A stretch of DNA of 64,000 nucleotides from Trichosphaerium sp. ATCC 40318. Its lineage: Eukaryota > Protista > Tubulinea. Below are positions 886-64,000 of the stretch, in pieces (position 1 is the first letter of the stretch; every line of letters begins with the position of its first letter). The stretch is taken from the NCBI GenBank assembly GCA_038496445.1, contig JALMLS010000447.1:124001-188000 (forward strand). Direction: 5' to 3'. Below the pieces are notes generated by a model. It saw nothing but the letters and a program-made list of their open reading frames with translations, searched no databases and was not told the DNA's origin. A program made the translations under genes and the position numbers.

Positions 886-3360
886 TTAAATGATAGTATC
901 AGGGCTTGCATCTACATGTTCAAAAATCCATTGCTGATCCCTGTTCATAATATTTGTAGATCCTACTACAACCTATTCATCGTTAAGCATGTTATTAGCT
1001 TGGAAAGAAGACATACGTTTTGACCTTTTTTTCCTCCTGCGCCACCATCAACGGATCCATAAGTACCAAACAGTCTAAATGCTCCATTTGGACCAGGAAC
1101 TTTTCTCCATTTTTGGTTAGGATGTGTGTTACAACTCCATACTCGTATGTTAAAGTCATCTCCGTAAAGACAGTGCTGTGTATTTTTCTTTTTGTACTGG
1201 TATAGGTTATTACCCAATGGAATCTCAACCCATTGTTGATTATCGTTATTAGCATCATACCTCCAAAGGTAAACCTTTCGCAATAAACATGTCAGCAAAG
1301 ATGGACAAGAACAATATTAATCATGAGCAAACAAGTAATAAGTATGTACTAAAACAAGGGTCCTCATGACAACAAAACTATTGAGGCATGTCGTACATTT
1401 TGACTTTGTGCTATATCATTGTCCAAAGCAAACTTAAGGTTATTGCTCTTTCTGAGTATATACATATTGTTACTTTCAAGTGACACTGATGATCCGGTGT
1501 ATCTTGGTAAGCAACCAAGTTTGATTCTTGAATCGATATACTGGCATGCAATGCTTTGGCTATTTCTAGAAAATCTATCGTACAACCAAGATCTAAAAGA
1601 AAACATGAGAAAAAACCGCGAAAAAAAACCAAAAATCTCCCACAAACAACATCACGTGATGAGTTTTCTCTTTTGTTTGTAATAACTCACGGATTATTTT
1701 GTAGGCCCGAATTCATTAAACCAAGACCTCTAGGATCATGAGGCATATCAACCAAGTGACCAACCTCATGTGATATGATTCTACGAAACTTGTACGGTGC
1801 ATAAAATCTAGCATGACACCTTGAGCTTCTTTGCTATTTTTCTTGTTAGATCAACATCTATCTACGGCAGTACTTACACACAAGTCCCCCAGTGGAGCAG
1901 CACCTGCAGCACCAAGATCCGGACAGTCGTGAACCAGTATTCCAGCTGCTACAGTAGACGGTACATTCAAAAGTTCTCTCCAATTATCCATAGTACTAAG
2001 CATTCTATAGCTAGCAGTTACAGGCGGACACTGACTACCACCTTTCGTGTTCCAAGCTTCAGGACCTAGCCGGCAATGTAAACAATAAAGTATAATGTAA
2101 GCACATAGTAAAGGTATCTTACCTGGAGACCTTCTAACATCGAGAACTCGAATAGTAAGGCGAAGGTTCTAAGTTCGAACAATAAGTCACAAACCAAAAG
2201 AAACAAGAAAATACGTACAAGATCAGATTCGTATACAACTGAAGATTCCAACACAGCTACAATAAAATTGTTATCCACATAACGCCAGCCACTTGACATA
2301 AATAAAAAAACCCCGTTCACATACCAACTTTAATCATATTCCGAGCATTCTTTTTTCCTCCTGCCCTATCATGGAATGATACAGAAGCCCATACACCTGT
2401 CTGTAACTCGTGTTTTCTTCGCGGACAAGGATTAGGTGGTGGAGAATAGGGAAGTGTACTTCCTTTTGGAACCTGGATCGCTTGCCTAAAAAATTTGTTG
2501 TAAGCAAAACAACCTTTTCTTTGGTCTCAAAGAATGTACCGTTTGCTTGATGAAAACTCAAACTCTCTATGAATATCGTCTACAGCGGGTACTTCAGGGT
2601 CCCTATATCATGTTAGAATACAATCTCTTTGTAAGGGTAGGATGTGTACCAGATGAATACGTGAGCATCTTCACCATAGCCCATACTTCGCTTTGGCAAG
2701 AATTGTTTGTGTCTTAGTGAAAAATTAACAATTACGGTGACATTCATTGAGATGTTGTTTACCTTGACAATGAGTCAAAACTAACACGAGTGCCATTGAT
2801 ATCAAGAGATCCCATAAATGTTCCATCTTCTCGAAATACAAACCGTAAATCATGATGCTTATCATTGACGGCCTTATACATGTCTTCACGTATAGGTACA
2901 ATTGTTTTGACTCCTTCTTCATGATGAGTTATCTAAAACACATAATGTAAGTAAAAAAATGGTGAGTTTAAACACAAAAAAAAATATCACGTGCCTCAGC
3001 TCCTTTGGCAAATACCGAATGTTTGATACACGTGAAAGTCCATTTTTTACCATTCTCGAATTGAAATACCATTTCTGCTTCACTTGGTAAAGCTTGGTTT
3101 GAGCCATCTAATGAACGAAACGATACTAAAACCAACAGTTAACTTTTTGTTCAAAAAAAAAAAACCCAAAGCCGTACTCCACCTAATTTGTTTCCTCAAG
3201 AAAAGAACGTACTCTTGTCAATAACATGTAGTTTTTCAGTATTCGCCCAGTGCTCTTCTTGCCAACATAGTACAGTTGTAGCTATAAGCACTAGATAAAT
3301 AGTTACCAAAGATTGAACTAATGAAGAAGAAGCCTTACATGAAACTAGCAGACGTATCAT
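886..3360 (-). CDS. Paralogous reprolysin-like metalloprotease + ricin-B lectin without the GPI tail (predicted secreted)
   Basis: Same exon structure mirrored. Zinc motif HEVGHLVDMPHD at 1770-1735 and GLMN Met-turn. The last exon reads VVVGSTNIMNRDQQWIFEHVDASPDTII*, with the stop at 888-886. Confidence 0.85.
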
Positions 3361-3794
3361 TGAGAACAAATCCTTGTACGTTGTACTCAGGGTATTGGTA
3401 ATTAAATTATGATAGTTGGTAATCGTTTTACTCGGGTAGAACCCTGGTAAGTTCACAGTGGACACTTACCCGAAGTTTAGCCGAATATCCGTAAACCAAA
3501 ATATATATTTCCTCCTACGTGAGTAGCACTGCAGTATCTAAAACCGAAAGTAGTTTTTGAAATTTTTAAGCGAAGTACACAAACCTCGCTAGTACAAGGG
3601 TTTTACATCTTTTTCCAAAGAGCAGAAATATACTGCTGGTTGTTACTGGATTGCTTTTTGGGTAAAACTGTAAAATGACAAAACAACACCTCGCTAGAGT
3701 TATGTTTTCATGTCTCTACAACTAGCGATACTAGTTGTTGTTTTACTGCGTACTTAATAAAATGACATTGTTGGATAAAAACGTATTTTTTGGT

Positions 3795-3996
3795 TTGTAC
3801 TAGATGCAAGCTAATATAGAGCACTGTTCGCTTTCGGTCGGGCCCATCGCTTCGCTCGGGACAAGAACCCGACCTTCGCTCACAAAATGTCATCCATTGG
3901 TGGGTATGGCAGCACAGGTTATATGTGACTAGGTACCAAAATCCACATGAATGGATTTTGCTTCAGACAGAAAATCTCTTCCCTGCTTGTACTAGA
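3795..3996. mobile_element. ~182 bp hairpin-rich segment present only in the left arm, bounded by the 10-bp direct repeat TTGTACTAGA
   Basis: TTGTACTAGA occurs at 3795-3804 and 3987-3996; the right arm has a single copy at ~11253-11262. Internal stems: GGTCGGG...CCCGACC and CAAAATCCA-catgaa-TGGATTTTG. Confidence 0.55.
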
Positions 3997-6580
3997 GTGT
4001 CAATTTTTTCACGCTAGCCAAAACAAACTAGGTATTTACAACTGCGGCTTGTAGCCACAGCTACATCAAATGACATTATATATTTAGCAATTATTGCCTT
4101 GTATCATTCAAGTTTTTTGAGACAGCAAAAAAAATCCAGTTTCGCCCTAATCTATCAGATATGACGGATTTTACACTTCTGACATATCTTGCAAATGTAA
4201 TTTTTTAATGTGATATACCCTTACGCCTGTCCAATGGATCCAAACCGTTTCCAACCACGTGATTTAACAAACCCGTAAGAACATTTTTTTATTTACATAT
4301 TTGACACCTGGCGGCGTTTACAAAGCCTGTAGCAACGCTGGTGGTGTTTTGGGAGGTTTTAACGTTATTACACCTACCTTGCTATTTGGATGCTGCCATA
4401 GCACTTTCGTTAGCGCGGGGTAGGCGCTAGCGTAGCGCTGGTAAGTTAGACAAGTACGTTGATTTTTTGAAGCAAAACATAAAGTAAACCGTGTTAGAGG
4501 CATTCGTACCGTGTTTGGCCACTACTCAGGTGTCAAAAACGTATTCCTTTTTCACACAGATGCTGTCTTCAATGATAATAACAGTATTTGCTGCTTACCT
4601 GTACATGCGCTTACTCTTTAGAGGCACACATTTACCCCTATGACACGTACATAAAAAGTTATTTCTTTGCTACCTGTGATTAATCACAACCACTTGCCAC
4701 CCTTTGTTTACGGCACTATAAGCCATAGAGCGTACGTAACAATCATCAGATCTACCGTTAAGACCTATACGAGGGTTAAACATCAAGCTGACGACCAGAA
4801 ATATTACAAAAGGTGGGAAATTGTATTGTAACTCGGTGTAATTTAAATGGCGATGATAAGCATCAGAATGATAAATTATACGCTCAAATACTTACCTGGT
4901 AGAATAGCAAGCGTTGGTTCTTTACCTTATTGCCATACCACACCAAAGCAGTCTCACCTCCATCAGAGAAGTGAAAGGGTTCACTAATACGTGTTAGTGG
5001 CAGTTTTAACGTATTGAATTGTTTTGGGCCGCTACAATTCGCCTGCGTGGTTTCCACACGCTTAAAAACGCTATTGCGGAGTCTGCGTACACGTTGGAAG
5101 TCATTTTGGGAATTGTGACGCAATTGCGCTCCAAAGATCGTTGTAAAGTTAGATCCCCATGCCCAGAACGTAGGGTAGTACGATGCTTTCAACAATGGGC
5201 ATATGACTTCAAAATTTGGTTATTCTGTGTTTGATTTATAGTACAGCTGCGGCGGACTGATAGCTAAGCCAAGTGAGAAGCGTGATACGCAATATCCAGC
5301 AAACCTTTTGTGTAGTAAGTGTAAGCCGCTATCGCAAGCGAACCAACAGCTAAATAACCAAAACCTTTTGACATATTGCGTGCTTGCTGCCAGCAAAGGT
5401 ACACTTAACCAAAATACGAACTTAGGTGGTTTTCTCTGGACAAATTTTCACTAATTTTAAATGACAACGTGTTGTACAACTAGTTTGTTTGCACAAAAAA
5501 TAAGCAGCTACTTATTCACGTGTGATGGCTGACGCTTTACCCGTTTATTTATTGATGGGCGTGTAGCATAGAAACGTATTGAACAAGAACTGCGGTTGTA
5601 GGGAAGTTGGAGTTTATTAATTTACATAAACTTCATTCAGTTTTTTTTGTGAGTTAGTGTTGCAATAGCTTCTCTCAATGGCGTGTGGCGGAAAGCAAAG
5701 CCAAGGTATTTTGTAACGACTGTTGCTTCCTTCGATGTCCACTATTCGCTTTGACTGCCTGTGGTTACGGCTATGGGGTTTGCTATGGAGGAGGACAATT
5801 GATCCATATAAATGGAGAAAAAGAGCGAGCTGGTAGAGGGAGAGTTCTATGTTGACTGTGGTGAGAGGAAGCAATATGAAGATACAGAAAACGCTTTAGC
5901 AAGATATCCAGATTTAGCTTCCAAGTGGCTTTCAGGCAACTATGTAATAAATTCTTTGTTTCGCGCAATGATTGACGGTGACAGTATCACCATTCCGTTG
6001 TATTCATCCCAAAACGTACGGCTGATTCTCAAACCTACCAAGATTCAAGCACATTGACATGCAGGTGTTTTGGCAGTGAACTCATCCTGATTGTTATCTT
6101 GGCTTACTCTCACACGTTGCTGTGTAACGCGCTGCAAATTATTAGTTTTAAATCCTAAAATAGTTTTGATTACACTGACACGTGATATATTTAGATTGAA
6201 TAAATCGGTTGATTACACATGCTCGTTTACGTTTCTAGTCTGATGTTAAGATTCGCGTAATGTATTCACGATGTTTCTCGTGAGATTTCACATAAAACTT
6301 ATTGATAGAGGGCTTCTTGTCACGTTTCTGCTTTAAGAATGACCGCGATCAACCCTAAAAGCGGTAGTATAGACTATAAACTATACCATACCATTAAATA
6401 GGTTGATAAAGCTCCAATACATAGTATTAGCACTCGCTAACACTAGGTATCGCGAAAGAAGTGCTCGTGCAGCAAAGAGTTTATCGAGGAAACCAAATAA
6501 AAATTGTGGTTGTCACGTCATTCTTGTTCACTGACTTGAAAAAAAATCAATAACAACCAACACAAACAACAACAAGCTAA

Positions 6581-7485
6581 ATGTCAAACAAACAAACATC
6601 AACCAACAACAAAACAAAGAAACTTGTCACTCAAAAGAAGAAACCATCAAAGGCACCAGTGTACGTTAATTTATCGTCAAGTGAAATCCAATGATTACTG
6701 ACACTCTTCATGATAGTACAAAGAAACCCACAGTTAACCCTGCAACTGTTGGAGGAGGTGTCGGAGGCACATTCATGAAGTCATTGCGTATGTTCTAAAG
6801 CCTGTGATGTATTCTAACAGTTTATGATAGCAAAACCTTGTGGTGTTGCTGGTTTGGGACCTTGTATCGGAATCATCAGCCCAAATCCAAATGGCACATG
6901 TTATTGTGCTCATATCAGCGACTCTTGCTCAATGAGAACATGGTGGACACCATACGATAAGATTCAAAAAGCAGTTCGTACAGCTTGGATTGAAGAAAAA
7001 ATCAAATCTGGTTTAGGTATGTAATTGTTTGCTTTGCTACTTTTGTGATCGTGATGTATGACTCACCCTATGGTCTAGGAAATCAACCAATCAGTAAAAG
7101 AACATTTTACGTGATGACAGGAATGCCAAAAGCAAATGCAACATTTGCGGCTGTACTTGAGGTATTGAAGGGTGCTCGCAAAGTGATCAATAAAACAGGA
7201 TGTAAAAGGTTTAAAAGTGGATTCTACTTGAATTCCAAGGGTGTTATTCGTCCACTTGTTGAACCTGATGCACTTTGGGCATGTGGTTGGGTTAAAGGAA
7301 CAACACTATCACAACGTTATAAGAATATGCCAAATAACAAGGTCAATGGAGATGGCGTATTTGACGTACCTGATATGAAAAAGTTTGATACAGTCGTTTC
7401 ACAAGTTCGTAAAGTAAAGAAGGGTTTGGTCAGTAAAGATGACCCAGCACTCAAAAAATTCAGGCATGTATTGGCGAAGGTATGA
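6581..7485 (+). CDS. 4-exon basic protein with a CheD/CNF1/YfiH/NTAN1-like Cys-His motif (putative deamidase/hydrolase)
   Basis: Exons ~6581-6660, 6717-6788, 6831-7016, 7079-7485 join in frame via GTACGT/GTATGT...TAG introns. The N-terminus is Lys/Thr-rich; the motif is VAGLGPCIGIISPNPNGTCYCAHIS. The gene model is solid; the function is inferred from the motif only. Confidence 0.65.
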
Positions 7486-7913
7486 TCACGTGCGAACTTT
7501 CGTATCATTGGATGATACGCCTTGTATATACTATAAATAAACAAACCCTTTATCAAGTATACTTTTTTTATTTTATTCAGCTGAGGTAAGTCACCGACAA
7601 TATAGGGCTTAGAGTAGCAGTATTTCTAATTTCTAGATTCTAGAATTTATCTGTAAAGTTAATTGGATGGGCATCTCTCAGAGCTACATGTAGAATCAGT
7701 TTTCAAACACCCAAGTATCGACCATCGATTGCAGATAGAAAGACAGAATAAAATAAAGTCCTTCACAACTTGTACCTATTGACCCATCAATGCCGTAATT
7801 CAATAACTCGATCAAACTTGCTCAAACTACAAAAAAAACAAAGACGGCTTTTTTGAAATTTTAAAAACGTTGTTATTACAAGCAATTATACAAAAGGGGT
7901 TTGAGTTTTAAAT

Positions 7914-8335
7914 TTATTCGTCATAGTATTCACCTTCTTCTTCATACTCATCAAGACAGTATCAGAAGCAACCTCTTCGTAATCCTTCTCCAACGCACCC
8001 AAATCTTCACGAGCTTCGCTAAAGTCGCCTTCCTCCATGACTTTTCCGACATACCAATGGACCTGAAAGAGAGAACGAAAGTAACTTGGAACAAAGAGCG
8101 AAAAAAAATCCAAAAGTTTCTGAGAAACTGAACATACAAAAGCGCTTGGCGAACATCAAATCGAATTTAAGGTTGCTGTGTGAAAATGTTTCAGCAATTG
8201 CTGTAGTGTTAGCAAGCATAAGAACAGCTCGGTAAACCTTTGCTAGGTTGCAACCAGGTACAACTGTAGGTGGACGGTTGTTGACACTGCACTTGAAACC
8301 AGTTGGACTCCAGTCTACAAATTGAACTTTTCCAG
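7914..8335 (-). pseudogene. TUBA: Alpha-tubulin 3' fragment, frameshifted, retains an intron
   Basis: Reads [53 protein letters not shown] / [29 protein letters not shown]. Frameshifts at KR(A)F and in the acidic tail, GEGM changed to GKVM, and the N-terminal ~3/4 is missing. Confidence 0.92.
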
Positions 8336-9340
8336 AGGAAAAAAGTCAACACCGAGTGGCAATGCGATAGTGTTGTAGGGCATTATACCTCGCTAATTCG
8401 CTTTTAGCTCATTGAACACTTCTGTGGTGCGATCGTACTGTGTACAGTTTGCGTGGATAGGTAAAATGCTGGGATCATCTTTAATGGTCTTTTGAAACTG
8501 ACATTAAAAATTTTGTTATCTTTTAAGGTTCATAAGTCATACAATGAAGGACAACATAGTAGCACAAATAGTTCACATTGACCATTTTGACAGAAGTTTT
8601 AATTATTAATATGCGTTGCGTGGATTACACGTCAACAGAACTGCTAAACTAATGTACCAAATAAAATAATGGCTATTAATAAAACAGGTTGCCGCAATAA
8701 TATGTATGTGTTGTAGACATGGATTTAGTTTTTTCCAGAACTGACAAGACGTGTCAGATCTTGTAGTTTTTGATAGATCTTGCAAAAACTAACAGAACTT
8801 GCACGATCTGTCAGATCTGACTAAACACCAAAACCAACAGGTACAGACAGCAAAAAGTTGCAAGCAGACAGTACCAACACGCAGGCAACACCTAACAGTA
8901 TAGATTCATTTGTTTTTTGAAAGGGTTGATATGGATGTTGGGTGTGTTAGGTTGTTGGACTCCCGTCCTGTGGGTTTGATGAGGGGTTGCCAGTACCCGT
9001 CTGGCTTGACAGCGGCCTGAATAACATTTTCATGTCCTTACCAAGCAAGTTTAAAGAGCGACATCAAGCAAATAGCAGCTGCATATGAATTACCATGTAC
9101 ACGTGTTACAGAACGATTCATAATATTTCCGCTTCAATTTACCATCTATCACGGATATGTTGTCATTGCGCTCATAATTTATTGTACTGTAAAGCTGAAG
9201 AGAAGTGGAATTTCTTGTAAAAAAAAGTCAAGTATTGTAAAACCATTTTCACTGACTGTTTTACTGTGCTCTTCGCTCTTTAACTTAAATCCATTTCACA
9301 GCCTGTTTGTTGTGCCGCCACAGAGCTAAGAAAGCAAGTC

Positions 9341-10219
9341 ATGGCACAAACGCGTCCTTTAAATAATTCACTTCTAAAGACCACTACAATTGCTCACTTA
9401 CCTGTTGAGATCATTTACGCTATTTTTAAAGAGGTAGCAACTGGAAAAGTTGTAGTTGTTGCTCTATGGAGCCTATATAACCTATCAGTGTGTAAACAAT
9501 GGCATACAATAGCTGCAGATGATGTATTATGGCGTGAGGTTTACAGTATCCATTACAACCTGGAAAACTCCGACTACACAAGTGGATATTTCTACCCTCC
9601 ATTTTTCAACCAAAATCCACAAAATCCAAGAAGATTGGACTTGTCACTCACGTGGAAGCAAAAATGTTTCACAGAGTGTATCTTTATTGATTTAATGAGA
9701 CATAGTGGTTTCTTGATGGACTATACCATAGAATATCTTTGTTCTACATCAGGTAGCAGCTTGTCAGAAGACGATTGTGACTATCAAATAGTTGTTGAAA
9801 AATTCGATGCACTTGTTTCTACTCACATTGATGCTGTTCATACTTTCTTGGAGAAAGTACTTCTTGATAAAAAGTATTATGATGCATTCTTGGTTTTGCT
9901 CAATACATGGGATAAATCAGCGTCATTCATGGAAGAGGGGTTTTACACTGATGCTCGTATGGACCACCCTCCATCTGAAGTTATACGTCCAATGGTAGGG
10001 GCAGTATTTACTGGAAATACACTCAAGAACAATAAACCAGCATGGTTAGAATTTTTGAAAGATGCTGCAAATGATTCTGATCTTTCTGTGTCTATAGCAG
10101 AAATTGGTGAAGATATGTTTCAGGTAGTCGATGAATATACACCAGAAGATACAGAACTTCTAAAATTAATTGGTGATACTATGAGTGTTGAGTACATGTT
10201 TGAGTATCGTAATCAATAA
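9341..10219 (+). CDS. Intronless F-box protein, 292 aa, acidic C-terminal region of unknown function
   Basis: IAHLPVEIIYAIF...LSVCKQWHTIAADDVLWREVY is a typical F-box motif. Confidence 0.85.
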   Translation: MAQTRPLNNSLLKTTTIAHLPVEIIYAIFKEVATGKVVVVALWSLYNLSVCKQWHTIAADDVLWREVYSIHYNLENSDYTSGYFYPPFFNQNPQNPRRLDLSLTWKQKCFTECIFIDLMRHSGFLMDYTIEYLCSTSGSSLSEDDCDYQIVVEKFDALVSTHIDAVHTFLEKVLLDKKYYDAFLVLLNTWDKSASFMEEGFYTDARMDHPPSEVIRPMVGAVFTGNTLKNNKPAWLEFLKDAANDSDLSVSIAEIGEDMFQVVDEYTPEDTELLKLIGDTMSVEYMFEYRNQ

Positions 10220-11149
10220 ACTTTAGAGAAACGATGAAAGAAAAAAACAAAATAAAGGTTGAACATATTTTTTATTGTGTATGCGTACAAAAGTTGCAGT
10301 CAAGCAGCTTTAGTATCAAATGCTGTTGTCATCTGTTGAACCGTGTTTCTAGAATCACTACCATTAGTCCTTGCACGGACCCACGTCATGGATACTGCAA
10401 CATTTTGCCGGTAACCGCTTTCCTCACTGATGTACAAGTAATATTGAAACGCTTATGTTCCACCATTTGTTCATCAAAAGTACACTGAATTTGACCTAAA
10501 ATTGCGCTATTTTGTTTATGCTAAAAGTGCTATGTAATGACAATATACCGCACACTGTACTTAACTATTCCTGTACCTTAATACATAGAAGATTTACAGG
10601 CTAACCTAATTGCCGTCTCAACGAACTCACTTTCTAGAAAATATTAGTAAAACTTGAAAGACAATAGTTGCCGTTGAACATTATTTTTTTTCCTATTCTT
10701 TGTTCAAGAATGTTAGTCACTGATACACGTGACTGTCTCATCATGTTTGTTAACAAATACTGTCTCAGATGTAGGCAAGAAACACAAGTGCAAGTTTATG
10801 ACCTAATTTCTTGTCACAAGGGCTGCTCCCATCTTTTTGATTTTCCATAAAACGACTTGATTATTATACGTGTCTACCCCTTGCCTAGACAGTCATATTC
10901 TGAGTGTTTGAAAAAAAACTACACGTGCGATTTTCTGTTCTTGAGGCTTTATGGATTGTTACCCATTTATGCCGTAGCTGTTTAGTAGCCACACTAAAAA
11001 GGGCGTTCAAGTAATTATAGAAGATCACCACTGAGTTGTTTCGAAAAAAAAAAAACATGCGTTTTTCGCTTCTATCACTGGTGTCCGGCAGTAAAACGTG
11101 CTTAAAAATGTGGAAAATACAACCTTTGCGAATTTGATCTAGCGCAAGC

Positions 11150-14100
11150 TAATTGCGCTAAATATATATAATGTCATTTGATGTAGCTATGGCTGCAAGC
11201 TGCAGCTGTAAATAACATAGTTTAGTTTTGGCTAGCGTGAAAAAATTGACACTCTAGTACAAACCAAAATACGTTCATGTCATCTTCATCAATTACGCAG
11301 TAAAAAAAACAACAAGCTTCGCTAGTTGTAGAGACATGAAAACATAATTCTAGCGAGGTGTTGTTTTGTCATTTTATAGTTTTACCCAAAAAGCAATCTA
11401 ATAACAACCAGTATATTTACACTCTTTGGAAGAAGATGTAAAAACCCTTGTACTAGCGAGGTTTGTGTACTTTGCTCAAAAATCCAAAAAAATAACTTAG
11501 GTTTTAGATACACTGCATATTTATTGAGTGCTACGCGCGTAGGAGGAAATATGTTGGTTTGCGGATATTCGGCTAAACTTCGGGTAAATGTCCACTGTGA
11601 ACTTACCAGGGTTCGGCCCGAGTACCATAATTTAATTACCAATACCCTGAGTACAACGTACAAGGATTTGTTCTCAATGATACGTCTGCTAGTTTCATGT
11701 AAGGCTTCTTCTTCGTTCGTTCAATCTTTGGTAACTATTTATCTAGTGCTTATAGCTACAACTGTACTATGTTGGCAAAAAGAGCACTGGGCGAATACTG
11801 AAAAACTACATGTTATTGACAAGAGTACGTTCTTTTCTTGAGGAAACAAATTAGGTGGAGTACGGCTTTGGGGTTTTTTTTTTTTGAACAAAAAGTTAAC
11901 TGTTTGTTGGCTTTTAGTATCGTTTCGTTCATTAGATGGCTCAAACCAAGCTTTACCAAGTGAAGCAGAAATGGTATTTCAATTCGAGAATGGTAAAAAA
12001 TGGACTTTCACGTGTATCAAACATTCGGTATTTGCCAAAGGAGCTGAGGCACGTGATATTTTTTTTTGTGTTTAAACTCACCATTTTTTTTACTTACATT
12101 ATGTGTTTTAGATAACTCATCATGAAGATGGAGTCAAAACAACTGTACCTATACGTGAAGACATGTATAAGGCCGTCAATGATAAGCATCATGATTTACG
12201 GTTTGTATTTCGAGAAGATGGAACATTTATGGGATCTCTTGATATCAATGGCACTCGTGTTAGTTTTGACTCATTGTCAAGGTAAACAATATCTCAATGC
12301 ATGTCACACGCACCGTAATTGTTAATTTTTCACTAAGACACAAACAATTCTTGCCAAAGCGAAGTATGGGCTATGGTGAAGATGCTCACGTATTCATCTG
12401 GTACACATCCTACCCTTACAAAGAGATTGTATTCTAACATGATATAGGGACCCTGAAGTACCTGCTGTAGGCGACATTCATAGAGAGTTTGAGTTTTCAT
12501 CAAGCAAACGGTACATTCTTTGAGACCAAAGAAAAGGTTGTTTTGCTTACAGCAAATTTTTTAGGCAAGCGGTCCAGGTTCCAAAAGGAAGTACACTTCC
12601 CTATTCTCCACCACCTAATCCTTGTCCGCGAAGCAAATACGAGTTACAGACAGGTGTGTGGGCTTCTGTATCATTCCATGATAGTGCAGGAGGATATATC
12701 AATGCTCGGAATATGATTAAAGTTGGTATGTGAAGGGGGTTTTTTTTTATGTCAAGTGGCTGGCGTTATGTGGATAACAATTTTATTGTAGCTGTGTTGG
12801 AATCTTCAGTTGTATACGAATCTGATCTTGTATGTATTTTCTTGTTTCTTTTGGTTTGTGACTTATTGTTCGAACTTAGAACCTTCGCCTTACTATTCGA
12901 GTTCTCGATGTTAGAAGGTCTCCAGGTAAGATACCTTTACTATGTGTTTACATTATACTTTGTTGTTCACATTGTTGGGTAGGTCTTCATGCTTGGAACA
13001 CGAAAGGTGGTAGTCAGTGTCCACGTGTAACTGCGAGCTACAGACTGCTTAAAACTATGGATAATTGGAGAGAACTTTTGAATGTACCGTCTACTGTAGC
13101 AGCTGGAATAATGGTTCACGACTGTCCTGATCTTGGTGCTGTAGGTGCTGCTCCAACTGGGAACTTGTGTGTAAGTACTGCCGTAGATAGACGTTGATCT
13201 AACAAGAAAAATAGCAAAGAAGCTCAAAGTGTCATGCTAGATTTAATGCACCGTACAAGTTTCGTAGAATCATATCACATGAGGTTGGCCACATGGTTGA
13301 TATGCCTCATGATCCTAGTGGCGTTGGTTTAATGAATTCGGGCCTACAAAATAATCCGTGAGTTACAAACAAAAGAGAAAACTCATCACGTGATGTTGTT
13401 TGTGGGAGATAAATTCTGATTTTTTTGGGTTTTTTTCATGTTTTTTTCTCACAGTTTTCTTTTAGATCTTGGTTGTACGATAGATTCTCTAGAAACAGCC
13501 AAAGGATTGCATGCCAGTACATCGATTCAAGAATCAAACTTGGTTGCTTACCAAGATACATTGGATCATTGTCACTTGAGAGTAATAATATGTATATACT
13601 CAGAAAGAGCAATAGCCGCAATTTTGCTTTGGACAATGGTAGAGCACAAAATGGTCAAAATGTACGTGCCTCTATAGTTTTGTTGTCATGAGGACCCTTG
13701 CTTTAGTGCATATTACTTCCTTGCTCATGATTAGTTTCTTGTCCATCTTTGCTGACGTGTTTGTTGCGAAGGTTTTCCTTTGGCCTTATGATGCTAATAA
13801 CAATAATCAACAATGGATTGAGATTCCATTGGGTAATAACCTATACCAGTACAGAAAGAAAAACGCACAGCATTGTCTTGACGGAGGTGGCAATAACATA
13901 CAATTATGGAGTTGTAACACACATCCTAACCAAAAATGGAGAAAAGTTGCTGGTCAAAATGGAGCATTCAGACTGCTGCTTGGTTCTTATGGGTCCGTTG
14001 ATGGTGGCGCAGGAGGAAGAAACTATCAAAACGTATGTCTTCTTTCCAAGCTAATAACATGCTTAATGATGAATAGGTTGGATTAGGATCTACAAGTAGT

Positions 14101-15119
14101 ACGAACAGGAATCAGCAATGGATTTTTGAACATGTAGATGCAAGACCTGATACATTGAGGAGAGCTGCATCATCGTCAAGTGCTCAACAATTCGCTGTCG
14201 GTATCATGTTGTTAACTTCACTTGTATTTTGTTTCATTTAAGTAGTAGTAGCTGGCTGTAATTGCTCGATACTAAATAAATATAATTTTATCACGTGTTT
14301 TTGCAGTTATTGGAATACACTATTTATGTTTCTCTAAAAGAGTTAAATATTTGGTTATGTACACGTACTTTCGGGTGGTTACCTGGATGATACTTTGGCT
14401 ACATATAACATGTCATATCGTCTTCCGCAGCGCATTTCATTCGTAATGTTTTGACGTAGTTTAAGGTGGTTGTGAGCGCAGTAAGCCGGTCTGCGTCCAT
14501 CATTCAAAGAAATTGGGTTTGTAGATTGGATACACGTGTATTTAAGATGGAAAAGAGAATATCAAGGTTACAACAGGTACAACGTCGATGTTTGATCAAA
14601 GATAACAGCTGTAAAGGAGAAAAACAGACTAAAACAAAAGCTATGGCAACTTCAATGCCGTGAAATCTTGATGGAGTCGTTTGAAAGGTGATGAACGGGT
14701 ATTAAACTAAAACTTGTTTAAACTTCAAATAGGATAGTATCATACGCTGTTCATACACGAGACCCGTTTATTCATGGTCCTCAATTGGTTTTACCATCTC
14801 ACCAAAGCCGTTACTCCAAAACGAGGCCCAATACATCCAAATGCTATTTCACAGGTACCAATTACGCGTTGAAGTCAGTTCTGTGACTCTAAAACGTTGC
14901 TTCGTAGATTGTCCAACTGAAATAATTTTCGAGTTTTTGGACAACCTTGAAGGATATGACTTGATCTCGCTTTCTTCTGTTTGTCGTATGCTTCATCACA
15001 TTATTAGCAATGAATCTAAATACATACACAAATGTATTGAGTCCATCGTAAGAGTTGAAAACACGTGATAACCGAAACTCTTACCACGTGATAATAGACA
15101 AAATTACAAACAAGTGAAA
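11150..15119. repeat. Right arm of the large inverted duplication
   Basis: Mirror of 1-4093. Paired ORFs in the track include 2334-2561/12489-12716 and 3196-3465/11524-11841. Confidence 0.97.
11677..14241 (+). CDS. Pre-pro reprolysin/ADAM-like (M12B) zinc metalloprotease + ricin-B lectin + GPI-anchor signal; ~13 exons, ~590 aa
   Basis: Splicing gives an open frame (approx. exons 11677-11824, 11918-12048, 12112-12281, 12338-12400, 12448-12510, 12565-12725, 12792-12829, 12880-12925, 12982-13170, 13215-13357, 13466-13661, 13772-14032, 14077-14241). It shows a hydrophobic N-terminus, a prodomain ending SSSKR, and reprolysin-like segments (VYESDLNLRLTI, AWN..C, DNWR, HDC...VGAAPTGNLC). The zinc motif is HEVGHMVDMPHD (13278-13313), followed by Met-turn GLMN and FSRNS. 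Three ricin repeats end NQQW/NQKW/NQQW, and the tail is SSSSAQQFAVGIMLLTSLVFCFI*. Confidence 0.88.
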
Positions 15120-16055
15120 GATTGAAACCTTTTTTTAAAGACAACTGCAACTATTGGCGTACATCCCTTTCCTCTTTACTTCTTTACTTCCACTTCTCTT
15201 GCTCTCATTCTAAATAATATTAGAACATCCCTTCTCATCATCAACATGGCAATTATCAAAGAAAGCGAGATGTCTCACAAGGTTGTTTAAGTCTGGTTCG
15301 AAAATAAACAAAACAATCGATCAACACCTTCATATTACACAAAGGGTTCGTGTAATTCGTGCTGGTATCATTGGTTATAATTACACAGCATTTGAGCCAC
15401 CTGACAGTATGTTGTTTAACATGTCGTGAGAGTACTTTGAATGACAAAAGATTTAGGGAATTACAAATTGGAACAAGAAGAAGAACCACAAGGATGTTTT
15501 GAGTGCTTCAAACCAGTTCTTAGTTACACATTACAGTACTGTTCTTTTTACAATACTCTCCTTTTTTCTTACTACCCATTTAACAACTATTGCAGCATTA
15601 CAGCTATTTCAAAGTTTACACCCAAGCCCACAGCAAATCGATTCAGAGACTTCTTTGATTGGGATGTATATGTTTTCTTCTTGTCATTGATGGATTACTT
15701 GCCAACACCGGATGGTGTATTTCCCATTCATGAAAGACTACAATATATCTCAGACGCCATAGCAATAAAAACCAAGCAAACCATTGTTGTCTTTGAGGAT
15801 ATCAGGGAATTCATTGAAAGCATCGAAACAGTTCCATTAAGCACTTGCTTTCCTGAATTTGAAGGTACATTTGGTTGTTTATGGTTCAAGACTAACTCTC
15901 TTCAAGGTGGAGACTTTAGGGAATCTATTAAGTACATTGAAAGAAAGATAAAGAAAAGTCATGCCAATACATCAGTCATATTGGAAAATGTATTTCAATG
16001 GATGCAAATTGTTATGATAGTAAACCACGCATTCCGTATGGGATTTTGTGTTTAA
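14670..16055 (+). CDS. Multi-exon F-box protein (right copy; 1-nt deletion near 14880 relative to the left copy, possibly disrupted)
   Basis: F-box motif at ~14900-15005. GT-AG introns (approx. 15048-15097, 15159-15223, 15407-15456) join it in frame to ORF 15441-16055. Start uncertain. Confidence 0.6.
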
Positions 16056-17216: not shown

Positions 17217-18210
17217 CACTTGTCTTGTTTTACACCATTGATGTAATTAAAGTGCTCCACCAATTAGTTATTGTAACGCCATTGCTTGTATTCTCCATCT
17301 AGTTTACCATTGATGTAATTAAAGTGCTTCATCTATTGGCCATTGTCATTCCATTCCTGGTATTTTCCATCTAGTTTACCATTAATGTAATTAAAGTGCA
17401 TCATCAGTTGGCCATTGTCATTCCATTCCTGGTATTTTCCATCTAGTTTTCCATTGATGTAATTACAATGCTCCATCAATTGGCCGTTGTTATACCATTC
17501 CTGGTATTTTCCATTTAGTTTACCATTGATGTAATTGCATTTCTCCTTCAATTGCCCATTGAAATGCCATTCTTTGTATTCTCCTTCCCATACACCTTTA
17601 ATATTAATAACGTGTACACATAATTGGCCATTGCGATGCCATCGCTTGTATTCTCCATCTAGTTTACCATTGATATAATTATAGTGCTCCATCAGTTGTT
17701 TATCGTCGATGTAATTACCATGCTCCATCAATTTGTTGTTGTGACGCCATTGCTTATATTCTCCATCTAGTTTACCATTGATGTAATTACAATGCTCCAT
17801 CAGTTGGCCATTGGAATACCATGCCTTGGATTCTCCATCTAGTATATCATTGATGTAATTACAATGCTCATTCAATCGGCCGGTGTAAAACCATCGCTTG
17901 CTTTCTCCTTCTAGTTTGCCATTACTATAATTACAATACTCAAGCAAGTTTCCATTTTCATGCCATGCCTTGCATTCTCCATGTCGTACACCATGTTTCC
18001 AGTATTGCTGCTTTACAAGCTTGTTATCAATTCTTTTGTGCCATTTTCCATGCTTGTTCATACCAGCATCGAACCTTGTGGTCATTGCTGTGTGTTTTGA
18101 TAAAACTGGCCAAATTAAATACGCAAATGGGTCTAAATCGATAATATCCAGTTGAATCTCAAACGGAAGGTTTAATAGATGGCAACCAACTGATTGTGTA
18201 TTAAATCTCT
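17217..18210 (-). pseudogene. F-box-like + MORN-variant (YwqK-like) repeat protein; 3' repeats interrupted by two in-frame stops
   Basis: About ten 24-aa/72-bp repeats of the form NGQLMEHCNYINGKLDGEYKxW. LLNLPFEIQLDII lies in frame upstream of the ORF Met. The repeats continue past TAG (17333) and TAA (~17268) to TGA (~17217). It may still encode a truncated protein. Confidence 0.8.
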
Positions 18211-44800: not shown

Positions 44801-47800
44801 CATTGAGTCGAAGAGTACAACAAGCACGTTTTCAATTGCAGTGTCTCCAGCATCTATTTTTGTAAACGTTAGACAAAATTATTTTGTAATTGAGTTTTTC
44901 TTACCTTGAGTGTTACTTCCGTCAACATCAACAAAAACGAAGTCACCAATCATTTGCATTGTTGTTCGGATACCAAAGTCGATATCGAGGTCATCATTGC
45001 CAAGAGTTGGGCTTGTCTGCAAATAAAGTTACAGATTTGTTCGAAAAAAAAGCAAAATGTTTGTTTCTTTTAAGGACGTACGATTGTAACACATGAAGCG
45101 CGATCTGGAGTACCATCTCCGTCAACGTCAACCATTTGGAGAGATCCATCAGAGTCAAGGGTATCATCTCCACCAACATCAGCAGTTACAGTCACTTCAG
45201 TGTTCAATAGAAGCACACAGATCATGTACTGAGTTGAAGGAAGAACGCCGTCTGAAGTATCGAATGAGTAAGCGCCAGTGTTATCTGTAGTTTCTCTGTC
45301 TGTTACAGTTCCATCACTGGTTCTTGTTATGGAAATAGGTCTGTTCATAACATCGAAATCGCCACCAGCTGAAAAAAAAATGTTAGAAAGAGCCTTGCTT
45401 CTTGCTGTATTTTTTCTTCAAATCACTTACATTGAACATTGTCGTTATCACCATCAAAGAATACACGATCACCAAGGGTTATTGTAGGGATATCAACAAA
45501 ACCAAAATCGTAGTTAGGGTTCATCATGTTGACTGAAGGTGAAGTCTAAAAACAGTGATTTAGTAATTATGTCGTTGAAGTAATAGAAAAATAACGTACA
45601 AAGTCAACACAAGATACACGATCAGGTGTGCCGTCTCCATCAATGTCAACAGTACGTTCGTCACCATCAGAGTCAATGGCGCCGTCCATACCAGCGCTGG
45701 TAGTAGTAGGGTTGTTACCTGCTGGGACAAGAGCACAGATAGTGTACAGTGTGTCAGGTAATAGGCCATCTGTTTCATCAAAACCATAGATACCACTCAT
45801 ATCTGTTGTATCTGTTGCAACAACAGTTCCACCTTGGATAAGTGCAACAAGTACACCATTGATTCCGGTTTCACCAGTTAAAAGACCATTTCCGTCAGAG
45901 TCGAGGAAGACAAGGTCACCAACAGATACAGTACCAGCGACAACGCCAAAGTCAATTGTATCGTCAGTATTGCCAGGGGTTGGAGAGGTGACATCAACAC
46001 ATGAGGCGCGCTCTGGAGTACCATCGCCATCAAAGTCGAATGTAGTTATTGTACCGTCTGAGTCGGTGGCTGTAGTACCCATTCCTGTTTGAGCAGGAAC
46101 ATCAAGAGCATCAAGTTCAATGCAGATGGTGTAGTCTGTGTTTGGTAGTACACCATCAGAAGTGTCGAAAGTGTATTCGCCGTTCATATCAGTGACATCG
46201 GTAGCGACAGGAGTGACATCATTGCGAGGGGTAATCACAACTGTTCTTCCTGGTACGTTTGTATCGCCACCATCTTGTACACCGTCGTTGTTGTTGTCCA
46301 TGAATACACGGTTTCCAATTGTGACAGGTTGATCAACGAAACCAAAGTCGATTGTAATGTCATTAACACCAAGTGCAGGTGAGGTCTTGTAAAATGTTAC
46401 TTAAGTAAAAATAAACCTTTAAATTAACGCACGATCATAATACAAGAAGCGCGATCAGGAGTGCCATCACCATCAAGATCAATCATTAGTTCAGAACCAT
46501 CAGAGTCGATAGTGTCATCTCCACCAAAGTTGGCAGTGATTGGATCTTGGGTTGCTGGGACTTGGGCGCAGACTCGGTACATTGTGTCTGGTAATAGACC
46601 ATCACCAGTAGAGAACATGTAGTTGCCCGTTGGATTGGTCATTGTACTGGCAACTTCAGCATCCATTGAATCGAAAAGTACAACAAGTACGTTTTCAATT
46701 GGACTGTCACCAGCGTCTAAAAAATGGAGTTAGCGCTTGTGAAGTATTTCTTAAATGACAGTACCTTGAACATTGTCTCCATTTTCATCAACGAAAACAA
46801 AGTCACCGATGAATTGCATTGGTGTATTGATACCAAAGTCGATATCAGTTCTGATATTACCAAGCGTAGGAGTTGTCTAACATTTTGTAAGCAAAAAATA
46901 CAAACATACAATTTTTTTGGAGACTTACGATTGTAACACATGAAGCGCGATCAGGAGTGCCATCGCCATCGACATCAACCATTTGAAGAGATCCATCAGA
47001 GTCAAGGGTATCATCTCCACCAACATCGGCAGTGACAGGTGTTTCAGTGCTCAAAACGAGAACACAGATCGTGTATTGAGTTGAAGGCATAACACCATCA
47101 GAAGTATCAAAAGAGTACATGCCCATGTTGTCTGTAGTTTCTCTATCGATAACCATGCCGTTACCTGTGTCTGTGATTGATACATCTCTGTTTACAACAG
47201 GAATATCTCCACCACCTGAAAAAAAAACATTAGCAAAGAAATAACGTGATTTTTTTTTGTCGTGAATTTGCAACACGTGTTATTCAACAGCTTTCAAAAA
47301 AAACTTTATTCAACAGAAATTGTATCGTACCTTGAACGTTATCTCCGTCATCAAAGAAAACGAAGTCACCAACACTTGTAGTCTGAGATACAAAACCAAA
47401 ATCGTAGTTGATGTTCATCATGTTGATTGAAGGTGAGACCTAAAGCAGAAAATGAGTAAAAAAAGCAAAGTGGAAAAAAAACCCGTACAATATCAACACA
47501 AGATACAAGGTCGTCCATGCCATCTCCATCAATATCAATAGAACGCATATCACCATCAGAGTCCATGGTAGTATCCATACCAGCCATTGCTGTGGAAAGG
47601 ACTGTGTTGGCTGGAATACGAGCACAGATAATGTAGCTTGTGTCTGGTAACAGGCCATCTGTTTCATCAAAACCATAGATACCGCTCATGTCAGTTGTGT
47701 CTGTTGCTATAACTGTTGTTCCAGATAGCAATACAACTTCAACATTTTCGATACCGCTTTCGCCTCCTGCACGTGACAAGTTAGTATTGCGAATTGGATG

Positions 47801-50800
47801 TTTAAACTCGTACCTTGGAGACCATTGTTGTCAGAATCGAGGAATACGAAATCGCCAACAGATACTGTACCAGCAACGACACCAAAGTCAATTGTATCGT
47901 CATTGCCGCCAGCAGTTGGAGAGGTGATATCAACACATGAGGCGCGCTCTGGAGTGCCATCGCCATCAAAGTCGAAGGTAGTTATTGTACCATCTGAGTC
48001 AGTGGCTGTGTTGCCCATTCCTGTTTGAGCAGGAAGGTCAAGAGCATCAAGTTCAACACAGATGGTGTAATCTGTGTTTGGTAGTACACCATCAGAAGTG
48101 TCGAAAGTGTATTCACCGTCCATGTCAGTGACATCAGTGGCGACAGGAGTGACATCATTGCGAGGGGTAATCACAACTGTTCTTCCTGGTACGTCTGTAT
48201 CGCCACCATCTTGTACACCATCGTTGTTGTTGTCCATGAATACACGGTTTCCAATGGTGACAGGTTGATCGATAAATCCAAAGTCGAAGGTAACATCATT
48301 GACGCCAAGTGCAGGTGTTGTCTAGTAAATGTAAGCATTGTCACAATATAAAAGGAACTTACGATCATAGCACAAGAAGCACGATCTTGAGCGCCATCTG
48401 AGTTTAGATCAATCATCATTTCAGAACCATCAGAGTCGATGGTGTCGTCTCCACCAAAGTTGGCAGTGATTGGATCTTGGGTTGCTGGGACTTGAACACA
48501 GATTTGGTACATTGTATCTGGTTCTATGCCATCTGCAGTTGAGAACATGTAGTTACCCATTGGATTGGTCATTGTACTATCAACTATAGCACCCAATGTA
48601 TCGAAAATTACAACAAGGACGTTGTCAATTGGAGTGTCTCCAGCATCTAATGTTCGAACGTGTTAGTAAAGAACTATTCATATTTTGTTTAGAGTTTTCT
48701 TACCTTGAGTGTTACTTCCGTCAACATCAACAAAAACGAAGTCACCAATCATTTGCATTGGTGTGTCGATACCAAAGTCGATATCGAGGTCATTGTTGCC
48801 AAGAGTTGGGCTTGTCTGTAAACAAAGTTAGAGATTTGTTCAAAAAAAAAGCAAAATGTTGTTTCCTTTAAGGACGTACGATTGTAACACATGAAGCGCG
48901 ATCTGGAGTACCATCTCCGTCAAAGTCAAAGGTAGTAAGAGATCCATCAGAGTCAAGGGTATCATCTCCACCAACATCAGCAGTGACAGGTGTTTCAGTG
49001 TTCAAAATAGCAACACAGATCATGTACTCTGTTGAAGGTAGAACACCATCAGCAGTATCGAAAGAGTACATGCCCATGTTGTCTGTATTTTCTCTAGCGA
49101 TAATCATGTTATCACTTGTGCGAGCAATAATAACTTCTCTGTTGATTACAGCAGGATCACCGGCATCTAAAAAGAAAAAAGGTAAGAACTCCATACAAGC
49201 GATGCATGTCAAGAAGAGCCCAAATGATCACGTACCTTGAACATTGTTGTTATCACCATCAAAGAAAACACGATCACCAAGGGTTATTGTTGTAGGTACT
49301 GCAACAAATCCAAAGTCGTAGTTAGGGTTCATCATGTTGACTGAAGGTGAAGTCTAAAAACAGTGATTTAGTAATTATGTCGTTGAAGTATTAGAAAAAA
49401 AACGTACAAAGTCAACACAAGATACACGATCAGGTGTGCCGTCTCCATCAATATCAACAGTACGTTCGTCACCATCAGAGTCAATGGCGCCGTCCATACC
49501 AGCTCCAGTGGCTGTTGGGTCTGTATTTGCTGGAACTTGAGCGCAGATAGTGTACATTGTGTCAGGTAATAGGCCATCTGTTTCATCAAAGCCATAGATA
49601 CCACTCATATCTGTTGTATCTGTTGCAACAACAGCTCCACCTTGGATAAGTGCAACAAGTACACCGTTGATTCCGGTTTCGCCCGTTGAGAGACCATCGT
49701 TATCAGAGTCGGTAAACACAAGGTCTCCAACAGATACGGTTCCAGCGACAACGCCAAAGTCGATTGTATCGTCAGTATTGCCAGGGGTTGGAGAGGTGAT
49801 ATCAACACATGAGGCGCGCTCAGGAGTACCATCGCCATCAAAGTCAAATGTAGTTATTGTACCGTCTGAGTCAGTGGCAGCTGTACCCATTCCTGTTTGA
49901 GCAGGGACATCAAGAGCGTCAAGTTCAATACAGATGGTGTAATCTGTGTTTGGTACAATACCATCAGTTTCATCGAAAGTGTATTCGCCGTTCATGTCGG
50001 TAACATCAGTGGCGACAGGAGTGACGTCATTGCGAAGAGTGATCACAACTGTTCTTCCTGGTACATCTGCGTCACCACCATCTTGTATGCCATCGTTATT
50101 GTTGTCCATGAATACACGGTTTCCAATAACAACTGGTTGATCAACGAAACCAAAATCAATTGTAATGTCGTTGACACCAAGTGCAGGTGATGTCTGTAAT
50201 TAAAAGTTAGCGTTGTACTCATAATAAAAAGTATACTTACAATATCGATACATGAAGCGCGATCAGGAGTGCCATCACCATCAAGATCAATCATTGTTTC
50301 AGAACCATCAGAGTCGATAGTGTCATCGCCACCAAAGTTGGCAGTGATTGGATCTTGGGTTGCTGGGATTTGGGCGCATACTTGGTAGTCTGTGTCTGGA
50401 AGTACGCCATCACCAGTTGAGAACATGTAGTTGCCCATTGGGTTGGTCATTGTGTTGGCAACTTCAATGCCCATTGAGTCGAAGAGTACGACAAGTACGT
50501 TTTCGATTGGACTGTCACCAGCGTCTATTGGAATATAACACATTAACAAACATATTTTAAGTGAGTTTATAGATTACCTTGCACGTTGTCTCCATTTTCA
50601 TCAACGAAGACAAAGTCACCGAGGAATTGCATTGGCGTGTTAATACCAAAGTCATTGTCGAGGTCTGAGTTACCAATAGTTGGACTCATCTGTAGAGAAG
50701 TGGTTAGTTAAAAAACTATTTAAAATCTACTTTTGATCCGTACAATAGTAACACATGAAGCGCGATCAGGAGTGCCATCGCCATCGACATCAACCATTTG

Positions 50801-62800: not shown

Positions 62801-64000
62801 GTCAAAGGTAGTTATTGTACCGTCTGAGTCGGTGGCTGCTGTACCCATTCCTGTTTGTGCAGGGACATCAAGAACGTCAAGTTCAATACAAATGGTATAA
62901 TCTGTGTTTGGCACAAGACCATCTGTTTCATCGAAAGTGTATTCGCCGTTCATGTCGGTGACATCGGTAGCGATAGGAGTGACATCATTGCGAAGGGTAA
63001 TCACAACTGTTCTTCCTGGTACGTCTGCGTCACCACCGTCTTGTATACCGTCATTGTTGTTGTCCATGAATACACGGTTTCCAACACTGACTGGTTGATT
63101 GACAAATCCAAAGTCAATTGTCAAGTCATTAACACCAGCATTAGGTGAGGTCTTTATCATAAAAGTTAGAGAAAGTTCAAGAATTATTTTCAAATTATCA
63201 ACGTACAATCATAACACATGAAGCACGGTCAGGAGTGCCATCTCCATCAAGATCAATCATTAGTTCAGCGCCATCAGAGTCAATGGTATCATCTCCACCA
63301 GAGTTGGCAGTGATTGGATCTTGGTTTGTTGGTACTTGGGCACATACTCGGTAGTCTGTGTCTGGAAGTAATCCATCGGTTGTAGAGAACATGTAGTTGC
63401 CCATTGCGTTGGTCATTGTGTTGGCAACTTCAACGTCCATTGAGTCGAAAAGTACGACAAGTACGTTGTTAATTTCAGTGTCGCCTCCATCTGTAAAAAG
63501 TAGAGTAAGAAAAGGGAAAGTGATTCTTTTAACTAAGACAGACGAAAAAATGATAAGATCAAGAAATAGTACCTTGAACGTTGTCTCCATTTTCATCAAC
63601 AAAGACAAAGTCACCAATAAATTGAGCTGGTGCATTGATAATACCAAAATCGATTGTATCGTCAGTGCCACCACCATTTGGAGAGGTGATGTCAGCACAT
63701 GAGGCGCGCTCTGGAGTACCATCGCCATCAAAGTCGAAAGTAGTTATTGTACCATCAGAATCAGTAGCTGCGGTACCCATTCCTGTTTGAGCAGGAAGGT
63801 CAAGAACGTCGAGTTCAATACAAATGGTGTAATCTGTGTTTGGAATTAAACCATCTGTTTCGTCGAAAGTGTATTCGCCGTTCATGTTGGTTACATCGGT
63901 AGCGATAGGAGTGACGTCATTGCGAAGGGTAATCACAACTGTTCTTCCTGGTACATCTGCGTCACCGCCATCTTGAATACCATCGTTGTTGTTGTCCATG
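32846..64000 (-). CDS. Giant SdrD B-like repeat protein (~62 domains in the window, roughly 7,500-8,000 aa, 5' end outside the window) with a C-terminal GDPH VWD/Root-cap/ITIH-C-like domain
   Basis: Each ~120-130 aa unit follows the SdrD B pattern (I/V)GD(R/F)VFxDx(D/N)xDGxQ...V.L....TTTD.NG.Y.F...P.T.Y.IC...T....G.DD.IDSDG...TIDFG. Short introns fall at recurring positions. The C-terminus reads ISGDPHFVGFNGQKF|DFHAFPDKYYAIISD...TYMGQIG...PH|GVLGQT...GVIDGKWEDYVV...FKFSKY, stop at 32846. Confidence 0.9.
33717..33728 (-). other. GD|PH putative autocatalytic Asp-Pro cleavage site
   Basis: Codons gga gat cct cac at the start of the terminal domain. The same motif is cleaved in mucin VWD domains, RGM proteins and ITIH heavy chains (DPHF). 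Confidence 0.7.
44480..64000 (-). repeat. Intragenic tandem array: ~10 copies of a ~1.85 kb four-domain unit (A-B-C-D)
   Basis: The A-domain MDNNNDG marker recurs at ~46301, 48237, 50109, 51954, 53799, 55623, 57488 (variant), 59337, 61199, 63067 and 63999. Confidence 0.95.

Follow-up and report, generated by a model that had tools for sequence, protein, structure and literature searches.

A head-to-head pair of putative adamalysin-like protease genes with ricin-B lectin domains in Trichosphaerium sp. ATCC 40318, one of which carries a candidate anchor tail

The adamalysins or reprolysins (MEROPS M12B: snake venom metalloproteinases, ADAMs and ADAMTS) are zinc proteases with a signal and a pro-region placed before the catalytic domain. 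We analysed a window of 64,000 nucleotides from Trichosphaerium sp. ATCC 40318 (GenBank assembly GCA_038496445.1, contig JALMLS010000447.1, positions 124,001 to 188,000 of the forward strand; the window is this whole stretch, and positions below are those of the window unless a contig is named), which contains two genes, L (left) and R (right), each encoding a predicted protease of this type followed by a ricin-B lectin. The pair shares with the adamalysins the HExxHxxxxxHD motif, a candidate Met-turn downstream of it and the HDC...G.A...C block upstream of it, as well as the order of signal, pro-region and catalytic domain. It differs from ADAM and ADAMTS proteins in having no disintegrin, Cys-rich or thrombospondin module, a ricin-B lectin being found instead. 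The existence of this protease-lectin gene pair, in which R alone ends in a hydrophobic tail, was confirmed.

Related surface proteases that differ in their anchoring have been described in other organisms. GP63 of Leishmania is a metzincin of family M8, and the glycosylphosphatidylinositol (GPI)-anchored and the secreted matrix metalloproteinases provide a further parallel. Among the Leishmania MSP/GP63 genes, a GPI addition site is predicted for some classes and is missing from one (PMC6006689). L and R resemble them as paralogous genes of putative metzincin surface proteases differing in a predicted GPI site, but MSP/GP63 has no lectin, its genes form tandem arrays, and its classes are distinguished by diverged C-termini and 3' untranslated regions rather than by one clean indel. 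Enzymes guided by a lectin are also known, such as the polypeptide GalNAc-transferases, which bear a ricin-B domain, and the snake venom P-IIId proteinases, which bear C-type lectin-like chains. In these enzymes a sugar- or ligand-binding module on a catalytic domain selects the substrates, as may be the case in the pair; the GalNAc-transferases differ from it in their chemistry, and the P-IIId proteinases in the lectin fold and its attachment (a disulfide-linked C-type lectin-like chain). Metalloendopeptidases have been named among the enzymes bearing ricin-B/CBM13 modules (PMC11212257). Our results do not overturn current understanding, because peptidase-lectin chimeras and paralogs of which one is GPI-anchored and another secreted are already known, and the pair would be a tidy, as yet unproven, case of a familiar route to bound and free enzyme forms.

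When the lectin-encoding exon 12 was searched against a large representative protein collection, no match exceeded 96 bits and none surpassed 46-56% identity, implying that the pair and its closest paralogs are not represented in that collection; the search yielded neither an orthologue nor a full-length model. In a Pfam scan, the ten top-ranked matches proved to be ricin/CBM13 modules that in most cases were joined to an enzyme, such as a glycoside hydrolase or a lyase, and four of the ten had type-9 secretion tails. Among the best 150 matches there were two metagenome proteins (P0024 and P0098) with Reprolysin_3/4/5 domains and a C-terminal ricin-B lectin, so a reprolysin-like plus ricin layout exists outside this genome. 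Both proteins have the order of the pair, an M12B-type catalytic domain and then a C-terminal ricin-B lectin, but their catalytic domains had no detectable similarity to those of the pair beyond the zinc motif, and neither a long pro-region nor a GPI-like tail was seen in them.

The explanation that we favour, with a probability of roughly 0.55, is that L and R are both live genes and belong to an expanded family of secreted zinc proteases of the adamalysin-like (M12B) type, in which the C-terminal ricin-B lectin would probably steer the enzyme to glycosylated targets. An inverted duplication of ~4.7 kb would have been followed by a stage at which the copies came to differ by one indel of 26 codons. 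R, with its apparently canonical GPI signal, would be cut at an Ala/Ser site and attached by a lipid to the outside of the plasma membrane, and L, having no tail, would be released as a soluble enzyme, which suggests a possible division of labour between a surface-bound and a released form. Signal cleavage, removal of the pro-peptide at a KR site, GPI attachment, sugar binding and the expression of both copies are predictions made from the sequence.

The R exons were placed by hand from three-frame translations and the raw sequence, and the L model was obtained by projecting the R boundaries through the alignment of the two duplication arms. Pfam, database and profile searches were run exon by exon, and the joined models were used for translation, alignment of the copies, substitution rates, hydropathy and the tail rule. 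Gene R (11677 to 14241, plus strand) has 13 exons encoding 577 aa, with the ATG at 11677 and a TAA at 14239-14241; its exons are 11677-11824, 11936-12027, 12112-12281, 12338-12400, 12448-12510, 12565-12725, 12792-12829, 12880-12925, 12983-13170, 13215-13357, 13466-13661, 13772-14032 and 14077-14241. Two in-frame alternatives for exon 2 (11936-12027 or 11918-12069) were both compatible with the model. Gene L (3360 to 886, minus strand) also has 13 exons, encoding 550 aa and ending in a stop at 886-888, and these are 3360-3213, 3107-3016, 2932-2763, 2712-2650, 2602-2540, 2485-2325, 2256-2219, 2168-2123, 2065-1878, 1833-1691, 1592-1397, 1274-1017 and 972-886. All 24 introns of the two genes are GT-AG, with lengths of 44-122 nt over both copies and 44-111 nt in R, both frames are free of internal stops, and the two proteins are 85% identical. 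The R start codon was backed by the paralogs found elsewhere in the genome, which open with matching M-I/W-R/K-L residues and a hydrophobic run like that of R, and the ends of R exons 9 and 10 matched the ends of open frames in the paralogs. An AATAAA was found 34 nt past the stop in each copy (R, 14275-14280, plus strand; L, 852-847, minus strand), which argues for an end of both genes at the common stop codon rather than in another exon.

These models agree with a first-pass annotation of the same DNA, which had described a head-to-head pair of genes that were hidden from the open reading frame (ORF) track: no ORF longer than 147 aa covers them, its limits of 886 and 14241 are exactly the two stop codons, and the intact 13-exon models lie in inverted arms and are divergently transcribed. 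The architecture that it had proposed (signal, pro-region with KR, M12B-like protease and ricin-B lectin, the lectin occupying the place of the ADAM disintegrin domain) was borne out by the domain, paralog-profile and hydropathy evidence that follows and by the start of the lectin, within exon 11, directly past the catalytic domain.

Both proteins begin with a predicted N-terminal hydrophobic signal of 32 aa (R, 11677 to 11772, plus strand; L, 3360-3265, minus strand), identified from hydropathy and the paralogs. The hydropathy peak is at residues 12-34, a predicted endoplasmic reticulum (ER) signal that is conserved across the paralogs, in which the same start and hydrophobic run are followed by a C-x-D/Q-x-E-Y/H-W motif. 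The pro-region that comes next has ~170 aa, with two KR sites (one of them in exon 4) and one Cys (TFTC). One dibasic site, SSSKR, has its Arg codon across the exon 5/6 junction and its end at 12508 to 12510 (plus strand), as read from the model; it lies ~27 aa before the first predicted catalytic strand and is a candidate point of pro-peptide cleavage. The pro-region, scanned as single short exons, had no Pfam match, including the M12B pro-peptide (Pep_M12B_propep).

The zinc motif is encoded by exon 10 (R, 13278 to 13313, plus strand, HEVGHMVDMPHD; L, 1770-1735, minus strand, HEVGHLVDMPHD). It has the pattern HEVGH(M/L)VDMPHD in the two copies, in which the HExxHxxxxxHD ligands and the catalytic base are present, and a candidate Met-turn, G-L-M, is found 5-7 residues past the HD in both, the paralogs having G-I/V-M at the same place. 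The assignment of the catalytic domain depended on the paralogs. In a second subfamily of these (loci C9, C165, C24, C109 and C29) a single fused exon is the counterpart of exons 9 and 10; it scored 32-43 bits with Reprolysin_5 (cut-off 27) and also passed Reprolysin_3 or Reprolysin_4. A profile of the fused exons matched snake venom metalloproteinases, ADAMTS-1/4/5 and ADAM33/8 in the PDB, from E 7e-6, and RVV-X was among the matches. R exon 10 matched the C9 paralog exon with an E-value of 5e-10, and a profile of the R-type exon 9 was colinear with the fused paralog exon through the HDC...G.A...C block (hhalign 89%, E 2e-6), a relation detected by the profile comparison alone, as BLASTP of R exon 9 against the C9 paralog exon gave no match. 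Because the fused exons pass the Reprolysin models and R is linked to them through exons 9 and 10, we accept the predicted catalytic domain as adamalysin-like, with one replaced Gly of the zinc motif, discussed below, as a reservation.

The ricin-B lectin, with three QxW repeats, was recognised by Pfam at 13575 to 14136 in R (plus strand; split by introns 11 and 12) and at 1480-913 in L (minus strand). R scored 30.2 bits with PF00652 (cut-off 29) and 32.4 bits with PF14200 (cut-off 25.6), and L scored 31.5 bits with PF14200, also above the cut-off. The subrepeats, encoded by the last three exons, end in QQW, QKW and QQW in both copies, and the paralogs have three QxW motifs at ~+340, +540 and +740 nt past HExxH. 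Since the C-terminal helix of the catalytic domain is followed at once by the lectin, the lectin takes the place of the disintegrin module of the ADAMs. The predicted sugar-binding Asp (the L-D or V-D position) was present in the three repeats of R and in two of the three repeats of L.

The C-termini are where the copies differ most clearly. L stops 13 residues past its last QxW, and R goes on with AASSSS, a polar spacer (AQQ by one count, five residues by another) and 16 uncharged hydrophobic residues that reach the last residue of R, so that hydropathy gave two hydrophobic segments in R (signal and tail) and one in L. Arm alignment and junction analysis located the difference in an R-only segment of 78 nt (14154 to 14231, plus strand), that is, 26 codons in frame, with one further substitution at the junction and a stop codon common to both genes. 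This single in-frame indel is the last-exon difference that the first-pass annotation had put at ~80 bp. The region encodes ...LRRAASSSSAQQ and then FAVGIMLLTSLVFC, comprising a run of small residues as the candidate omega region, a short spacer and the greater part of the hydrophobic tail, in accordance with the claim in the same annotation that the segment carries the predicted omega site and hydrophobic tail. As an intron the segment was ruled out, because it has no GT/AG boundaries.

A crude GPI-like rule, which asked for small residues at omega and omega+2, then a spacer and a C-terminus that is hydrophobic and uncharged, was passed by R and failed by L; among arbitrary stop-delimited frame ends of the genome, 16 of 2011 (<1%) passed it, several of which resemble real tails of another secreted family. 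Two GPI transamidase subunits were sought in the genome and both were found, Gaa1 with 62.8 bits (C69) and Gpi16/PIG-T with 89.6 bits (C214). A match between the putative R tail and the textbook features of a GPI signal is supported. The tail could instead simply anchor the C-terminus in a membrane, act in ER retention or degradation, or have no function, given that it was judged by a rule of thumb, that T-rich sequence readily encodes hydrophobic runs and that the GPI signals of this lineage lack characterisation here. We consider this improbable: a run of 16 hydrophobic residues at the very C-terminus, leaving none for the cytosolic side, is short for a transmembrane anchor, a cluster of small residues lies upstream of it at the expected distance, and the genome has the transamidase subunit genes.

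Six-frame searches of the whole genome gave 41 ricin-B and 33 Reprolysin_5 matches. The family consists of at least 15 loci, namely R, L and at least 13 with colinear matches to R exons (C98, C45, C41, C185, C136, C9, C29, C13, C24, C109, C165, C406 and C115). L and R are mutual closest relatives, with 78-89% identity per exon versus at most 53% to the next locus. At 12 of the 13 other loci checked, the protein stops 6-9 residues past the third QxW, with endings such as VFVRVTQ, VFVTPPK, KFEKPPTA and VYEPRLV. The remaining one, C136, ends in VFVRVTQQQ after a last repeat that looks degraded. None of the 13 had a hydrophobic C-terminal tail, which makes the tail unique to R, and a short extension, EHVDAxPDT, was common to L and R and absent from the other loci.

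Within the family we also noted that C136 (146086-146857) has no clean third QxW and may be a pseudogene. At the C45 locus, on the minus strand at ~1500-1700 of that locus, the last lectin exon has its end (GDQQW.FVRVTE and a stop) duplicated in tandem. Several contigs formed near-identical pairs with identical search scores (C98/C45, C41/C185, C29/C13, C165/C406 and C94/C430), which could be haplotypes left uncollapsed or segmental duplications of very recent date; the locus counts therefore exceed the gene counts.

The distribution of tails in the family favours, by parsimony, a gain of the putative signal in R. If the ancestor had a tail, one deletion in L would be the simpler mechanism. 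No donor of the 78 nt was found elsewhere in the genome at the DNA or protein level, the window holding just 18-nt chance matches, and the indel junctions had no clear, informative microhomology, and for these reasons either direction fits the data. The statement of the first-pass annotation that the duplication "produced" the two forms was thus upheld for the difference in the tail and not for its origin, as gain in R and loss in L are both compatible with what we found. A bolder proposal is that the 78 nt are a newborn GPI signal with no genomic donor, gained by one member of a young inverted pair that would then show a secreted enzyme before and after its change to surface anchoring, and that the family represents lineage-specific lectin-guided adamalysins under diversifying selection; this we regard as speculative and rather unlikely. 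Its last element comes from the observation that exons diverged more than introns between the copies (5.4% versus 3.4%, p = 0.026, in a small sample), an excess that diversifying selection could explain.

The genes lie in the arms of an inverted duplication, which the repeat finder, pairwise alignment and self-BLAST described as two arms of ~4.7 kb each with 92-93% overall identity. The contig sequence was extended leftwards past the window start for the mapping of the arms by self-BLAST. The left arm runs from -913 (913 nt before the window start) to 3768 and the right arm from 16025 back to 11277, with 7.5 kb of unique spacer between them. Each arm carries one protease-lectin gene and, according to Pfam on flanking ORFs, a neighbouring F-box/G-alpha-like gene, and L and R are transcribed away from each other. 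Near-identical contig pairs such as C98/C45, C41/C185, C29/C13 and C165/C406 suggest uncollapsed haplotypes in the assembly, and two haplotypes joined head to head could, as an artefact, give an inverted pair. Such an origin is very improbable for L and R, since both arms are in one contig of 268 kb with 7.5 kb of unique, gene-bearing sequence between them, and they differ by 7-8% and many indels, far beyond what is found in the near-identical contig pairs.

The identity of the arms was uneven, being 97-100% in the 5' half of the gene (11620-12900) and in the far 3' flank (14540-15120), and 90-92% across exons 9-13 (12900-14400). This suggests patchy gene conversion that left the catalytic-lectin half diverged, or accelerated divergence of the coding sequence, or both.

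The reading of both copies as live genes is based on the retention of their frames, of the 24 splice sites and of the catalytic residues (His, Glu, His, His and Asp, intact in both copies), and on the exon indels between them, all four of which are multiples of three, those of the introns not being so. There were 94 substitutions between the copies, and a simulation gave a ~10% chance of staying stop-free if one copy had taken half of them without constraint.

Several points weigh against the explanation that we favour. The Gly of the HExxHxxGxxHD motif is an Asp in both L and R; it is kept in the nearest paralogs (C98, C41 and C136) and is Asn or Asp in the second subfamily. The R catalytic exons scored below the Pfam cut-offs, because they are too short on their own: the best was exon 10, with 15.3 bits for Reprolysin_5 (cut-off 27; E 0.023), and exon 9 alone found nothing in Pfam. 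The calls of a GPI tail and of a signal come from a crude rule and hydropathy rather than from dedicated predictors. The ratio of nonsynonymous to synonymous substitution rates (dN/dS) was 0.80 overall (0.55 in the pro-region, 0.67 in the catalytic domain and 0.98 in the lectin), with p = 0.37 against a value of 1, and being indistinguishable from neutrality it implies that one copy could be drifting. In L, a Tyr stands in place of the usual sugar-binding Asp of the second lectin repeat (1151-1274), which reads CLYGDDF versus CLDGGG in R (13772-13900) and in the outgroup paralogs. A word search with the 147-aa ORF around exon 12 and an exact look-up of five window ORFs returned no transcripts or proteins of L or R, and metagenome scans, both with the exon 12/13 junction and protein-guided, gave no match to either. 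The blank is uninformative, as a control word search with a neighbouring gene was equally blank.

Some of these points would be expected if one copy, more likely L, were a redundant duplicate of recent origin on its way to being lost by drift, and the indel a neutral accident that divides no function between the copies. The dN/dS close to 1, above all in the lectin, the second-repeat Asp lost from L and the blank expression searches for either copy, which the control shares, are all consistent with drift, as is the larger number of changes derived in L than in R when polarised by outgroups (10 versus 5, not significant). L has acquired no stop, frameshift or lost splice site in spite of ~5% divergence, its exon indels are all in frame and its catalytic residues are intact, and we therefore consider drift toward loss unlikely, and the retention of two live copies the better explanation.

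Beyond what the first-pass annotation contained, this analysis adds a family of at least 15 loci, a tail that is unique to R and a reprolysin-like plus ricin layout in two metagenome proteins. If our explanation is correct, this amoeba would have an unannotated protease family of some size, its members directed by a sugar-binding domain, which would bear on how phagotrophic protists attack glycan-coated prey or remodel their own surface. With ~85% of the other residues identical, a comparison of the two recent copies would show what a GPI signal does almost free of other differences, and the pair could be a convenient natural system for the effects of anchoring versus release and for the gain or loss of anchor signals.

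Turning to the surroundings of the pair, the window has no long ORFs and a G+C content of 35-42%, and is eukaryotic in style. To the left of the window, C72:120317-121096 (window -3684 to -2905) is a third, partial copy of the F-box region, 87% identical to window 14544-15324. ORFs in the spacer and flanks, at 9341-10219 (plus strand), 17333-18085 (minus strand) and 6824-7485 (plus strand), included an F-box-like ORF (PF12937, 33.6 bits) and a MORN_2-repeat ORF; two spacer or flank ORFs beside these had no Pfam match. Farther to the right, the minus strand of 45567-63208 holds a tandem array of at least nine ORFs of 244-299 aa, with a spacing of 1.1-3.8 kb that is mostly ~1.9 kb, and the three ORFs of the array that were scanned all contained Pfam SdrD_B, with E-values of 1e-26 to 1e-31. 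Three similar frame ends (...CVDFVRFCVVPTFL...) that were caught by the crude GPI-like rule are suspected members of this SdrD_B array.

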